Of a stretch of DNA of 64,000 nt, positions 40,987 through 59,200 are shown one piece after another. The first letter of the stretch is position 1. The number at the start of each line of letters is the position of its first letter. A program made the position numbers and the translations under genes. Source of the stretch: Isurus oxyrinchus (Eukaryota); assembly GCA_026770705.1 (NCBI GenBank), contig JANJGN010000021.1:93186001-93250000 (forward strand), in the 5' to 3' direction. The notes under the pieces were generated by a model. That model saw only the letters and a list, made by a program, of their open reading frames with translations, had not been told where the DNA came from and made no database searches.

Positions 40987-42387
40987 TTATCTTGTTGCAC
41001 AAATGTTCTTGTACTGACACAGAAGATGCTTGAAGGTTTTCTTGAAGTTATTATTACACAGTGCATAACAGGCTGGGTTGACGGTACTGTTGATGTAAGC
41101 AAGCCAGAATCCAATAGTCCAAGCTGTGTTGGGGATGCAGGTTGAACAGAACGTGTTAATGAGCACCATGATAAAGTATGGGCTCCAAGTGATGATAACC
41201 GCCAGGAGAATAGCCAGGATGGTTCTAGTCACTTTGTCCTCTCGGGATACAGCTCCCTTCTTCTTCTTAGCAGGGATATTGGTCATATTAATGATCTTAT
41301 TGTCTGCTCTAATCCCTCTGTCATTCCCATTCTTACTGATGACACCTGGCACTATTACTGCCGTAGTGCAAATGTCATCATCTTTTTGAGATTTGCTAAC
41401 TATCGTTATGCATGAGAGTTTGGGGTTGTCCACCCTGAAACAGCTTTCAGCATTACAAACATTTGTGCTCTCTTGCATTGCGCCTTCCTTCTGGTTTGAT
41501 GGGTCCACACTGATGGACATTGACTCATTGGAGAGCTTCTTCTCTCCTTGGCCACAATTATCAGCGATTATTTCACCAGTTATTTTGACATGTGGTAAAT
41601 CATCAGGAACATTCAATATGTTGTTATTATTCTGTTTCATTATTTTGCCCTTCACTAGACTGGGTAAAAAGGTGTACTTGCTTGATTTAGTCTCCTTTTT
41701 ATCCTCCTTTACACGACTCTTGCTGGCACGAGATATTTGCACATACAAAATCATCATGATAATAACAGGAAGATAGAAGCCAGCTATAGCAGTGCCAAAA
41801 GTGACAGCTGGATTTGAGAAGAACGGTGCATAACACTCACCCTCACTAACTGAGCGCTCCCCTACGATGTACTGCCAGAACAGAATGACAGGACCCAACA
41901 GGATAAACGACAACACCCAAGCAGCTGCGATCATCATCCCTGCTATCTTCGCTGTTCTCTTCACGGGGTATCTAAGGGGCTTTGTCACACAGAAGTAGCG
42001 GTCAAAGCTGATGATCAGGAGGTTCATAGAAGAGGCGTTACTGACAACGTAATCTAGAGCAAGCCATAAATCACAAACCACTGGGCCCAACGGCCAGTAG
42101 CCAATAATAATGTAGGTGGTGTATAGATTCATAGAGAATACACCAATAATCAAATCAGAACAGGCCAAGCTAAAAATAAAGTAGTTGTTGATAGTTTGTA
42201 ATTGTCTGTTTACTTTGATAGAGACAATAACCAGAATGTTTCCAATAATGGTCACCAGACTTAAAGATCCTGTCACAATCACAATGAAGACCACTTCAAC
42301 CGTTTTGTAGGCACTCCCCCTTTCAGTATCAATCAAGCCTGTTAGGTTGCTGAGAGATTTATTTGTCTCTATTGAGTTTGCCATCAT
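40987..42387 (-). CDS. CHRM2: Muscarinic acetylcholine receptor M2-like GPCR, 466 aa, single coding exon, divergent pocket
   Basis: Intact ORF from MMANS...; [50 protein letters not shown] (Gi-type), NSTVNPACY and an M2-type C-terminus [15 protein letters not shown]; acceptor (poly-Y TAG) at 42421-42422; AATAAA at 40808-40813. Probably a paralog rather than the ortholog. Confidence 0.95.
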
Positions 42388-45059
42388 TCCCCTCTGACGT
42401 GTAGTTAACACTGACAAGGCCTAAATGTAGAAAATAAAATAAAAAAAAGAAATAAGATTTCAGATGTGTTGAAGTTAAAGTACAACTGGTCACTAATTGA
42501 AGTTCTATCAGTGAGAACATGAAAAGCTATCTGCTCTTATAAACTGCAATATCTTTGCCAGGAGGGACTCTGATTTAATGAGGAATCATCTCATGGGTCA
42601 CTAAATGCACAATTTATTAATATTTATTTATGTGTGTCAAGCTGAATGAAGGTGTTGATGAGTGACATTACTAACGTTCCTCAGGATTTTAGTTTCAATG
42701 ATCCAATATGACTAGGTGAAACACCTTTGTGCTCTGCAAATACTCAACTGCTAAAGGGAGAATACTTTTACTCCTTTGATCTCTTTAAGTTCATGTATCA
42801 AGACCACAAACTCATGTAAACACTGAAAATCCCTATCACCTAGGGAAGCGTTGGCAGAAGAGCAGATGTCCCAGTGTCCTCCTTCTCTCACAGAAGGAGC
42901 AAGCATCCTATCCAATTAGCTTTCAGTCAGAGGCAGACGGGAAACAAAGGCTCAGAGCTTCACCTCTGGGAGGGAGAGAACTGTCTGAGATTGAGCCACT
43001 TTATGTCGATGCTATGCACTTCAAAGCAGTTGGCTGTGGGGTTGTATTAATGGAAGCCTGACACCAGTTTTAATCCTCTCATTTCTATAATTATATAGTT
43101 TGCATGTTTTATGAGCACTGTGCTAAGTACTAGAATAGTTTTCCTGATGCTGGTATTATAAAGCAAATGTAGTCAACGAATCAGGGGATTTAAAATGGCA
43201 ACAATCTTTACCAGAGCTGGTGCTGTAACTAAAAAACATGCTCCACACTGCGTAATGTCGAATGCTTAAAAATCTGCTTTTATACCTATTAGCCATCTCA
43301 GGGCGAACACACACGCTGTTCAAAGCTGTGCGACTGACAGATGGTCTGCTCGATTCAAGGCGTTAGAAAGGAAAGGTGCAGAAAGGAAAAGTTAAGAAAG
43401 TAATGATAGATGATGGGCAGAGGCCCATGAAAGGGGAAGACAGCAAGTTCAGGTCAAGGCAAGATACAAGTGAGGCGCAAATAACCATAACTTGCTGATC
43501 AATTCATACCACTCTTCAGTTTGCCTTGCCAAAGAAAATCTCACCCTGAACACCTCCCCACCCATGCCCTCCCCTGAATTACTTGTGCTTGCTGTGCACT
43601 TTAAATCTGAATTAAACTCACCGCAGAAAGTTAGAGCTGATAATAAGCACCCTTCAAGCAACGTGACTATTGTAAACGCAATGCCAAGCAACCTCACTGG
43701 CCCTTAAGGGCTCAACTTGAATTATGATTCTCATCCCTGCAGGTGTAAATTCTTACTGGAGACCGGTGTTGTGCAGCAGTGGCTGCCTCTCTGTCTATGC
43801 TGCCTTCCTTAATTAATCAGCCACCTCTACACCCACCTGCTCTTCACTGCCTCCTCCTGGCAATGTTGAGTGGGGGGGTGGTGGTGGTGGGGCGGGCAGT
43901 ACACCTTGAGTATATTGAGTTGTAGGGTGGCTGGGTTGTGCTGTTAATGATAGAGTTGATCTGGAGACACTTTGTCAGTGGAAACTAAGTTTATTTATGT
44001 CATATTCAGCAGCCACTATACATGTGCTCTCAACTCTAACTCTATCTCTGCACTGTCTGCGAAGGTAGCCCACGCTACTCTCTTATTGGTTACTACAGAT
44101 CATGTGATCTTCCACGACAAGTAATATTCTTAAAGGTACATTACACACTAAATAAAACCATTGGTACTACACCTGGCCACCCGAACAATTCCTCCTCACG
44201 GGAGGTAGGATTTTTCTGATGGTGGCGTTTCCTGCCCTGCTACCCAAAAAAATCAGGATCCCCACCACTACTATCTGCACCACCACCAGCCCCAGCCTCC
44301 TCACCACAGCCAACCAAGGAGAGTTAATTAGCTCAAGAGAGAGAACTTCGGTCCATCGCTTTGGAGTCTGCCCCGTGTTAGAGAGCTGCCAGTCAATTTG
44401 ATTGGCCAGCAGGTCTGTAGACACAGCTGTGCCAGTAGCAACAGTGGGCAGTACTGGGAGCGGAACAAGCCCTCAAAGGCAAAATGGATATATCCAGGAC
44501 CAAATAAATATGGGGCCTTTATCCCCGGGGAGGGGAGGCCTGAGTGGTGCGGTGGAGGGGGGCAAGGGCGATGGGGAGAGGGTGGTGCGGCTCTTGATGG
44601 TGAGGGCAGAAGGGAGGGTACCCATGGGGAGCGGACATTGTGCAGATGTGGTTGGGGGGGGTGGGGGGGGGGGCGTGGTGGGGTGGTGCCCGATGTGGAA
44701 AGGGGGGTCATTGAAGGATGCGCTTGGCCTGATCAGGTGACTTTCCAGGTTTCTGCTCCTGAACCCCTCTTGCCAGCCTTAAAACTGAGACCCAGCAGGA
44801 AGCGACCTTCGGATGGTCATTAATTTCTCACCGAAGGGCCTCAATTGTAGCTGGAGCAGATGGGCCGGCCCAGGATAAAACTGCGGGTAGGTCGGTGTGG
44901 GCAGTGGGAAGGCGATCCAGGGAATGTTACACACCTCAGCCCAACCACCCCCACCCCCGCACTTCCCTCCCCCACCCCCACCAACCCAGACTGTCAATCT
45001 GCTGGCAAGGGAGTGTAAAACTTGGCCCTGGGCCTTCCTCCCTCCTGCGAAGATCTCGC

Positions 45060-56204: not shown

Positions 56205-59200
56205 TTCTTTTTTATACATCCATGGGATGTGGGCTTCGCTGGCTGGCCCAGTATTTATTGCCCATCCCTAGTTGTCCTTAAGGAAGGTGGTAGTGAGCTG
56301 ATTTCTTGAACCGCTGCAGTTCATGTGGTGTGGGTACACCCACAGTGCTGCTAGAGAGGGAGTTCCAGGATTTTGACTCAATGACATTGAAGGAACAGCA
56401 ATATATTTCAAAGTAAGGATGCTTATTGACTTTGAGGGGAACTTCCAGGTGGTGGCATTCCCATTTATCTGCTGTTCTTGCCATTCTAAATGGTAGTGGT
56501 TGTGGGTTTGGGTGGTACTGTCGAAGAAGCCTTGTTGAATTCCTGCAATGCGTCTTGTAGATGGTACACACTGCTGCCACTGTGCGTCTATGGTAGAGGG
56601 AGTGAATGTTTGTGGATGTGGCGTCAATCAAGCGGGTTGCTTTGCCCTGGATGGTGTCAAGTTCCTTGAGTGCTATGGGGGCTGCACTCATCCAGGCAAG
56701 TGGGGAGTATTACATCACACTCCTGACTTGTGCCTTGTAAGTGGTGAACAGGCTTTGGGGAGTCAAGAAGTGAGTTACTCACTGCAGGATTCCTAGCCTT
56801 TGACATGCTTTTGTAGCCACCGTGTTTATATGGCTAGACCAGTTCAGTTTCTGGTTAATGATAATACCCAGGGTGTTGATAGTGGGGATTCAGTGATGGT
56901 AATACCATTGAACATCAAGGGGCAATGGTTGAATTCCCCTTTGTTGTAGATGGTCATTACCTGGCACTTGTGTGGCACAAATGTTACTTACCAGTTACCA
57001 GCTTGCTGCAGATGGACATGCTTCAGTATCTGAGGAGTCGCTAATGGTGCTGAACATTGTGCAAACATCAGCAAACATCCCCATTTCTGACTTTATGATG
57101 GAAGGAAGGTCATTGATGAAGCAGCTGATGGTTGGGCTGAGGACACTACCCTGAGGAACTCTGCAGTGATGTCCTGGAGCTGAGATGACTGACCTCCAAC
57201 AAACACAACCATCAACCATCTTCCTTTGTGCTAGGTATGACTCCAACTAGTGGAGAGATTTCCTCTGATTCCCATTGACTCCAGTTTTGCTAGGGCTCCT
57301 TGGCCAAATGCTGCCTTAGTGTCAAGGGCAGTCACTCTCACCTCACCTCGGGAGTTCAGCTGTTTTGTCCATGTTTGAACCAAGGCTACAATGAGGTCAG
57401 GAGCTGAGTGGCCCTGGTGGAACCCAAACTGGGTGTCAGTGAGCAGGTTATTGCTAAGTAATTGCCACTTGATAACATTGTTGATGATCCCTTCAATTCC
57501 TTTGCTGATGTTGGAGAGTAGACTGATGGGGCCGTAATTGACCGGGTTGGATTTATCCTGCAATTTTCCACATAGCCGGGTAGATGCCAGTGTTGTAGCT
57601 GTACTGGAACAGGTTGGCGAAGGGTGCGGCAAGGTCTGGAGCTTAAGCCTTCAGTACTATTGCTGGAATATTGTCAGGGCCCATGGCCTTTGCGGTATCC
57701 AGTGCCTTCAGCTGTTTCTTGATATCACATGGAGTGAACCAAATTGGCTGAAGACTGGCACATGGTGATGTTGGGGACCTCCAGGGGTGGCCGAGATGGA
57801 TCATCCACTCGGCACTTCTGGCTAAAGATTGTAGCAAATACTTCAGCCTTATCTTTTGCACTGATGTGCTGGGCTCCCCCATCATTGAGGATGGGGATAT
57901 TTGTGTAGCCTCCTCCCCCAGTGAGTTGTTTTATTGTCCACCAGCATTCACGGCTGGATGTGGCAGGACTGCAGAGCTTAGGTCTGAACCTTTGGTGGTG
58001 GGGTCGCTTCACCCAGTCTATCACTTGCTGCTTATGCTGTTTGATGCGCAAGTAGTCTGTGTTGTAACCTCACCAGGTTGACACCTCATTTTTAGGTATT
58101 CCTGGTACTACTCCTGGCATGCCCTCCTGCACTTTTCATTGAACCAGGGTTGATACCCTGGCTTGATGGTAATGGTAAAGTGGGGAATATGCCAGGCCAT
58201 GAGGTTACAGATTGTGTTTGAATACAATTCTGCTGCTGCTGATGGCCCACAGCGCCTCATTGATGCCCAGGCTTGAGTTGCTAGATCTGCTCAAAATCTA
58301 TCTCATTTAGCATGGTGGTAGTGCCACACAATGCAATGGATGGTATCCTTGATGTGAAGGTGGGACTTTGTCTCCACAATGACTCTGCAGTGGTCAATCC
58401 TGCCGGTACTATCATGGACAGATGCATCTGCAGCAGGTAGGTTGGTGAGAATCGGGTCAAGTAAGTTTTTCCCTCGTTGGTTCCCTCACCACCTGCCGCA
58501 CGCCCAGTCTACCAGCTATGTCATTTAGGACTCGGCCAGCTTGTTCAGTAGTGGTGCTACCGAGCCACTCTTGGTGATAGACATTGAAGTCCCCCATCCA
58601 GAGTACATTCTGCACCCTTGCCACCCTCAGTGATTTTTCCAAGTGGTGTTCAACATGGAGGAGCACTGATTCATCAGCTGAGAGAAGGCGGTACATGGTA
58701 ATCAGCAGGAGGTTCCCTTGCCCAAGTTTGACATGATGCCATGAGACTTCATGGGTCCAGAGTCGATGTTGAGGACTCCCAGGGCAGCTCCCTCCCAACT
58801 GTATACCGCTGGTTTGCCACCTCTGCTGGGCCTGTCCTGCCGATGGGACAGGACATACCCAGGGATGGTGACAGTGGTGTCCAAGGCATTATCTGTAAGG
58901 TATGATTCCATGAGGATGACAATGTCAGGCTGTTGCTTGACTAGTCTGTGAGACAGCTCTCCCAATTTCTGCATGAGCCCCCAGATGTAAGTAAGGAGGA
59001 CTTTGCAGGGTCGACAGGGATGAGATTGCCGTTGTTGTTTCTGGTGCCTAGGTCGACGCCAGGTAATCTGTCTGGTTTCATTCCTTTTCTGTGACTTTGC
59101 AGCAGTTTGTTACAACTGAGTGGCTTGCTAGGCCATTTCAGAAGACATTTAGGAGTCAAATATATTGCTGTAGGTTTAGGTAAGGACAACAGGCTTCCTT

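Follow-up and report, generated by a model that had tools for sequence, protein, structure and literature searches.

Muscarinic receptors are a textbook case of extreme conservation, and bony vertebrates possess one CHRM2 gene (teleosts two). A 64,000-nucleotide stretch of the genome of the shark Isurus oxyrinchus (contig JANJGN010000021.1 of assembly GCA_026770705.1, positions 93,186,001 to 93,250,000 of the forward strand; hereafter the window) carries an intact gene for an M2-like receptor in which the acetylcholine (ACh) pocket has been rebuilt. This raises the question of whether the protein is still an ACh receptor. An earlier note, made from the letters of the window, had proposed a duplicated receptor for a different cationic amine. 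We call this gene and its counterparts in five other shark species X-type, and consider it probable that they encode a functional, selectively maintained M2 paralogue with altered muscarinic pharmacology, perhaps serving another ligand.

An intact M2-like receptor with an altered pocket

The open reading frame (ORF) occupies positions 40987..42417 of the minus strand; its first ATG lies at 42387, it specifies 466 residues and a stop codon, and the window is free of N runs. The protein contains a full 7tm_1 domain (Pfam, E 1.6e-64). Among all PDB chains searched with phmmer its top match is human M2 (6u1n_R, E 4.4e-187), followed by M4 (1e-151), by M3, M5 and M1 (about 1e-116 to 1e-110) and by the histamine H1 receptor (1e-55). 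Identity is 66% with human M2 and about 80% with M2a, the separate, canonical-pocket M2 of sharks. Besides the 7tm_1 domain the protein has the marks of a class A G protein-coupled receptor (GPCR), namely DRY, CWxP, NPxxY, D2.50 and the disulfide between C3.25 and extracellular loop 2 (ECL2). It belongs by descent to the M2/M4 branch, M2 being its best PDB match and the gene being nested in elasmobranch M2 on the tree described below. The protein also keeps both pairs of extracellular disulfide cysteines and, at its N-terminus, the N-glycosylation sites. When the window was searched with the protein (tblastn), no further copy turned up.

The positions of the gene and of its diagnostic residues are collected in Table 1. 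Because a T-rich tract with a terminal AG stands 33 nt upstream of the ATG, one or more exons of the 5' untranslated region would lie further upstream, as in CHRM2. The Leu codon that the window lacks at 41020 is present (HLLLC) in a second I. oxyrinchus individual (sequencing run X1), in the sister species and in all orthologues. In the codons of transmembrane helices (TM) 6 and 7, that independent individual shows 0 differences from the window.

Table 1. The X-type gene and its diagnostic codons, in window positions.
Feature	Position	Strand	Description
X-type M2-like coding sequence	40987..42387	(-)	Single exon, complete, 466 aa; stop codon 40987-40989
Predicted 3' splice acceptor	42421..42462	(-)	T-rich polypyrimidine tract ending AG, 33 nt upstream of ATG; read from sequence
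D3.32 codon	42052..42054	(-)	GAT; amine counter-ion kept
V3.40S	42028..42030	(-)	TCT; connector (P-I-F triad) position; common to all six X-type genes
W4.57L and A4.58G	41893..41898	(-)	TM4, LWAP to LLGP; TTG (41896-98) and GGT (41893-95)
I/V178A and Q179P	41824..41829	(-)	ECL2, CYIQF to CYAPF; GCA (41827-29) and CCG (41824-26); X-type-unique derived states
A5.46G	41779..41781	(-)	GGC; X-type-unique shared derived state; half of DREADD pair
K6.31D	41236..41238	(-)	Cytoplasmic end of TM6, beside kept E6.30 and VT..IL; X-type-unique shared derived state
F6.44V	41197..41199	(-)	GTT; connector (P-I-F triad) position; X-type-unique shared derived state
TM6 WSPYF	41173..41184	(-)	W6.48 and Y6.51 kept; 6.49 is S (T/A6.49S); N6.52F (TTT, 41173-41175)
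TM7 GFWLAY	41098..41109	(-)	Y7.39F (TTC, 41107-09) and C7.42A (GCT, 41098-100); Y7.43 kept
In-frame 3-nt indel, helix 8 / C-tail	41020..41022	(-)	HLLC in the window, HLLLC elsewhere

For the comparison of pocket residues the protein was aligned with human M2 (phmmer) and with 11 M2 sequences of bony vertebrates (MAFFT). As reference we used 17 sites taken as the orthosteric contacts of the M2 structures: D3.32, Y3.33, S3.36, N3.37, W4.57, F/L181, T5.39, T5.42, A5.43, A5.46, F5.47, W6.48, Y6.51, N6.52, Y7.39, C7.42 and Y7.43. The roles of D103, W155, N404 and Y426 from this list are corroborated by published work (PMC11987023). Across the sequences compared (canonical M2, shark M1-like and cyclostome muscarinic), site 181 (F or L) is the only one of the 17 that varies. 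Koala M2, shark M2a and lamprey M4-like receptors have identical residues at all 17 sites and also at V3.40 and F6.44; M1-like receptors of shark, lamprey and hagfish deviate only by L at 181, and one teleost M4 sequence deviates at four contact sites.

The X-type gene of the window keeps 12 of the 17 contacts, the changes being W4.57L, A5.46G, N6.52F, Y7.39F and C7.42A. Measured by the M1-M5 contact set as a hallmark of muscarinic pharmacology, it falls outside with 5 of 17 sites changed. Counting sites that are invariant in bony-vertebrate M2, change is more frequent in the pocket (5/17) than in the rest of the core (24/222; odds ratio 3.4, one-sided Fisher p=0.04), a real but modest enrichment. 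The pocket substitutions listed in the earlier note were all found at their codons, and the alignments added V3.40S, F6.44V, K6.31D and T/A6.49S. They also bore out the retention of D3.32, Y3.33, W6.48, Y6.51, Y7.43, DRY, NPxxY and VT..IL, to which E6.30 can be joined. At least two nucleotide changes are required for each of N to F, C to A, I to A and V to S, and the ORF has stayed intact, again as had been noted. At 4.57/4.58 the orthologues vary: L/A in white shark, F/V in the carcharhiniform genes and W/A in basking shark.

The changes also include positions 3.40 and 6.44, which in class A GPCRs couple the pocket to movement of TM6. An 11-residue stretch of TM6 containing VT..IL (V385, T386, I389 and L390 in M2), which marks the Gi/o type, is kept, and the junctions of intracellular loops (ICL) 2 and 3 are conserved and M2-like. 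With VT..IL and the loop junctions in place, retained coupling to Gi/o is predicted.

A family derived from M2a

Is the window gene simply the shark CHRM2? A protein cluster look-up showed M2a proteins of sharks as different as Heptranchias and Carcharodon, and of all others, to share at least 90% identity, and M2a and M2-like genes lie on different contigs in Carcharodon, Cetorhinus, both Scyliorhinus species and Mustelus. As judged from these genomes, X-type is not the CHRM2 orthologue but an M2-like paralogue. The earlier note was right to call the gene a duplicate: every annotated shark has a separate M2a with canonical pocket on another chromosome-scale contig, and the possibility raised there, that this might be the sole CHRM2 orthologue, does not apply. 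X-type and M2a share the single coding exon, the layout of ICL3, DRY, NPxxY, VT..IL, the aromatic cage around D3.32 and the disulfide cysteines; they differ in chromosome, in 5 of the 17 contacts, in both connector residues and in a rate of evolution 7-9 times higher in X-type.

X-type is one of many such genes. There are at least five M2-like genes in Cetorhinus, at least ten in Mustelus asterias, at least six in each of Scyliorhinus canicula and S. torazame, and several in orectolobiforms; a protein search showed several of them to share one chromosome-scale contig per species. A protein search with ICL3 only retrieved five proteins, all already found, leaving the census unchanged. In a tree with nine shark M2a sequences, rooted on M4 and lamprey M4-like sequences, 33 M2-like genes form one clade (SH-aLRT 99) nested inside galeomorph M2a, and Heptranchias, Pristiophorus and Heterodontus diverge first. 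The ICL3 of the window gene has 65-70% identity with that of shark M2a, against 46% with skates and 38-46% with bony vertebrates; the identities in ICL3 and in the N-terminus are in keeping with this placement of the family. The nesting of the 33 genes implies that the family arose from M2a in a common ancestor shared by Orectolobiformes, Lamniformes and Carcharhiniformes. An ancient ohnologue was also considered, a first tree with one M2a having put the family outside jawed-vertebrate M2, but the inclusion of nine M2a sequences moved it inside galeomorph M2a.

Pocket composition differs among family members. Cetorhinus P0002, S. torazame P0065, Mustelus P0017 and Chiloscyllium P0118 have a pocket that is canonical throughout, with none of the 17 sites changed. 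Counting this type, at least three pocket types other than X-type span shark orders, the remaining two being characterized by F7.42 and by L181/I5.39/F6.52 with W6.48 replaced. A pair of Cetorhinus maximus proteins (XP_078422397 / XP_078422396, P0007 / P0006) departs further from the ACh pocket than the window gene does: one of them lacks the amine counter-ion (D3.32G) and carries W6.48F, and its neighbour has N3.37T, F181L, T5.39I, A5.46S, W6.48F and N6.52F. In stingrays (Hemitrygon akajei and Hypanus sabinus) there is a separate M2-like expansion nested in batoid M2 (P0014, P0016, P0021, P0022, P0024, P0025 and P0027), with A5.43G, N6.52S, N3.37Y/S and F6.44C as pocket changes. No paper describing a chondrichthyan CHRM2 expansion or shark CHRM2-like genes was found, supplements included, and the main study of vertebrate muscarinic receptor evolution mentions sharks only within a reference (PMC6298421). 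So far, the M2-like genes appear to be known only as automatic 'M2-like' annotations.

White shark, basking shark, two catsharks and one houndshark also have the X-type pocket, giving six genes in two orders. The nearest relatives of the window gene are Carcharodon XP_041069103 (96.9% identity) and Cetorhinus XP_078422400 (93%), and the signature is also seen in S. canicula XP_038671263, S. torazame XP_072329349 and Mustelus XP_078075424. Five states, V178A, Q179P, A5.46G, K6.31D and F6.44V, are found in all six X-type genes; the 21 other family genes checked from lamniforms and carcharhiniforms have none of them. X-type genes additionally share N6.52F, Y7.39F and C7.42A, yet these are present in some other family genes. 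The ICL3 states specific to the window gene and the other lamniform paralogues number only three. With all alignment columns, X-type genes fall on one side of a branch, with support of 71 for five genes and 69 for all six. On the alignment stripped of 14 signature columns their monophyly is lost, but the approximately unbiased (AU) test does not reject it (log-likelihood difference 20, p=0.106). We judge common descent before the split of lamniforms and carcharhiniforms to be more likely than convergence. A convergent origin of the pocket in the two orders was considered less likely given the five unique shared states, including K6.31D outside the pocket, and the AU result (p 0.11).

The basking-shark orthologue (XP_078422400, P0001) is a mosaic. 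Its TM4-ECL2, TM5-end and TM7 segments nearly match its canonical neighbour P0002, and W4.57, Y7.39 and C7.42 are restored, while AP, G5.46, V6.44 and F6.52 persist. Because X-type and P0002-like segments are combined in this way, patchy gene conversion between family paralogues is suggested.

Selection, predicted pharmacology and alternative explanations

Between the window gene and its catshark orthologue identity is 87-88% in the seven-helix core and 53-54% in ICL3 (Fisher p=2e-13), a gap that indicates long-term purifying selection on the core. The ORF is open in six X-type species, and the presence of the remodelled pocket in five species other than I. oxyrinchus, from two orders, argues for function rather than decay. 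Against the white-shark orthologue, a rough ratio of non-synonymous to synonymous rates (omega) is at most about 0.43 (binomial p 0.046 versus neutrality), a weak figure since some of the contigs are paralogue-derived; it combines at least nine synonymous differences from contigs of the sister species (organism B) with 14 replacements from the protein comparison. The organism B contigs agree with the Carcharodon protein at four diagnostic replacements. In reads of the sister species, flanking non-coding divergence is about 1.9% and the non-synonymous rate dN about 1.3%.

Across the family, changes at the 17 pocket sites versus the other core sites number 41 against 782 (n=33), compared with 0 against 101 in canonical M2 (n=17; Fisher p=0.017), and on these counts pocket-specific constraint appears to have been lost. 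The loss is uneven within the pocket. No change is seen at Y3.33, T5.42, F5.47, Y6.51 or Y7.43 and a single one at D3.32, whereas N6.52, C7.42, F181, A5.46 and Y7.39 change four to seven times each. Across the family, then, the cage that binds the cation is kept and the side that recognizes the tail varies.

What might such a pocket bind? In X-type, the side that recognizes the ester or tail is replaced (N6.52F, Y7.39F, C7.42A, A5.46G, W4.57L and the AP of ECL2). The cavity would be larger and less polar, with N6.52 and Y7.39 turned to Phe, with W4.57, A5.46 and C7.42 shrunk, and with D3.32 and the cage intact, so that a cationic amine head group could still be bound through D3.32 and the aromatic residues. 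In M2, N404(6.52) detects ACh by way of a water network and causes TM6 to open, W155A lowers the affinity of agonists and antagonists more than 10-fold, and Y7.39 belongs to the tyrosine lid (PMC11987023). Because N6.52, which M2 needs to turn ACh binding into activation, is gone, the potency and efficacy of ACh and the affinities for N-methylscopolamine (NMS), quinuclidinyl benzilate (QNB) and atropine are expected to be strongly changed. X-type probably either responds differently to ACh or senses another small cationic molecule. Its native agonist could be ACh itself, acting far less potently, or another cationic small molecule of more hydrophobic character, the latter being somewhat more likely. 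The fixed pair V3.40S/F6.44V suggests that the activation switch may have been retuned together with the pocket.

Known systems offer partial parallels. DREADDs (designer receptors that only designer drugs activate; hM3Dq and hM4Di) share A5.46G, which X-type carries naturally, and Y3.33C plus A5.46G turns M3 from ACh to clozapine N-oxide (CNO) or deschloroclozapine (DCZ) (PMC12015759). The earlier label of a natural DREADD change is correct as to A5.46G itself and overstated as a label, since X-type retains Y3.33 and so has only half of the pair; N6.52F, Y7.39F, C7.42A and W4.57L are not DREADD mutations, the definition of a DREADD does not fit, and nothing in these data points to sensitivity to clozapine-like ligands. 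For the M2-like family as a whole the nearest functional analogy is perhaps with the trace amine-associated receptors (TAARs), where an aminergic scaffold was likewise duplicated into a lineage-specific family with the counter-ion kept and tail positions varying (PMC8890504). The M2-like family differs in being M2-derived and small (about 5-10 genes) and in having a pocket that is not hypervariable relative to the rest of the core. Arthropod B-type muscarinic receptors are, like X-type, of the muscarinic family; they couple to Gi/o, as is predicted for X-type, and there classical pharmacology has been lost: the insect receptors are activated by ACh and insensitive to atropine and QNB (PMC7203735). 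They are, in contrast, an ancient invertebrate lineage activated by ACh, and X-type is a recent CHRM2 duplicate. In GPCR numbering, the histamine H1 receptor, the next-best non-muscarinic PDB match, shares the Y6.51/F6.52 pair together with D3.32/Y3.33. X-type is nonetheless without the histamine-binding N5.46 and K5.39, and is nested within M2 on the tree.

Several observations weigh against a selectively maintained receptor of altered pharmacology, and many of them would be expected if X-type were a redundant duplicate under relaxed constraint, drifting to loss, with its pocket changes as damage and its expression weak or silent. The protein evolves 7-9 times faster than M2a, with path lengths of 0.076 versus 0.008 between Carcharodon and Cetorhinus and of 0.51 versus 0.07 between catshark and Mustelus. 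The recent lamnid branch shows equal divergence of core and ICL3 (97% and 98% identity, p=0.76), and constraint on X-type may have been relaxed there recently. Pocket hypervariability was not found in the family, pocket and other core sites having 2.9 and 2.9 changes per site in a first set and 2.4 and 2.9 in a second. The earlier suggestion of a lineage-specific family of muscarinic-derived sensors is in this respect half upheld: a family by descent exists, but its pocket sites change at the average rate rather than faster, and general relaxation would yield that same average. No contig on the gene was obtained from two probable RNA runs of the sister species, which is not proof of absence. 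Without the 14 signature columns, moreover, lamniform family genes group together and X-type monophyly is lost; the weak signal outside the signature could reflect either slow lamniform rates or gene conversion homogenising the family. The basking-shark orthologue, lacking part of the signature, would also fit decay. We nevertheless consider decay improbable: ORFs remain open in six species of two orders, the five unique derived states are kept in 6/6 genes, the motifs of class A activation and trafficking are intact, synonymous changes relative to white shark exceed the neutral expectation, and the long-term excess of conservation in the core over ICL3 is large (p=2e-13).

It also seems rather unlikely that X-type is an ordinary ACh receptor, one of a set of duplicates that split the tissue or developmental expression of M2, with pocket changes that only tune potency and antagonist sensitivity. 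D3.32 and Y3.33, W6.48, Y6.51, Y7.43, T5.42 and F5.47 are invariant in X-type genes, and several family members have a fully canonical pocket, as would suit this explanation. A further count against the reading we prefer comes from the insect B-type receptors (PMC7203735): because they keep an ACh response without classical pharmacology, answering ACh despite their insensitivity to atropine and QNB, X-type may still respond to ACh. On the other side, N6.52, the ACh sensor and activation trigger, is now Phe and W4.57 is lost (PMC11987023), and 5 or 6 of 17 otherwise invariant contacts have been replaced and then kept across orders. That X-type works with no orthosteric agonist at all, whether constitutively active through the changes at 3.40 and 6.44 or as a heteromer partner or modulator of M2a, we hold to be very improbable; V3.40S and F6.44V are indeed fixed in 6/6 X-type genes, but the kept D3.32 and aromatic cage argue for a bound ligand.

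The reading of altered pharmacology, with a possible new ligand, concerns X-type. An extension to the whole galeomorph family, as Gi-coupled sensors for different cationic small molecules with X-type serving a non-ACh ligand, is possible and put forward tentatively; just as tentative is what would follow from it, that vertebrates saw an aminergic neurotransmitter receptor radiate in TAAR-like fashion a second time, independently.

In sharks, a family of CHRM2-derived genes, about 5 to 10 or more in number, has escaped the constraint on muscarinic receptors, with distinct pocket types kept across orders, and this amounts to a natural experiment in which the ACh pocket is rebuilt while the activation machinery is preserved. 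A new ligand, if real, would mean an unrecognised signalling or sensing system in sharks and a source of ACh-insensitive Gi-coupled scaffolds for chemogenetics. If X-type is still ACh-responsive, it shows which 'essential' contacts, N6.52 especially, are dispensable. In practical terms, the paralogues are all annotated 'M2-like' and could be taken for CHRM2 in comparative or marker-based studies.

Sequencing runs and the rest of the window

All sequencing runs that contain the X-type gene are DNA. They include very small ones of 10-46 million letters (X1, X2 and X7-X16). In X1, word depths on the gene are in the thousands and some contigs have paralogue-like differences in TM2-TM3. These runs look like targeted capture data with the X-type gene or its paralogues as a target, and mixing of paralogues is a risk if such data serve as a marker.

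In the 30-64 kb part of the window no further protein-coding gene is recognisable. A reverse-transcriptase fragment lies at 57231-57632 (Pfam RVT_1, E 3e-6, below the gathering score). A G-rich minisatellite of at least 30.7 kb (window 2-30761) begins about 10 kb past the receptor gene's 3' end and extends off the window edge, with a 26-bp unit in about 1195 copies, 78% matches, a GC content of about 0.61 and a GC skew of about +0.7; the long ORFs inside it are repeat artefacts.

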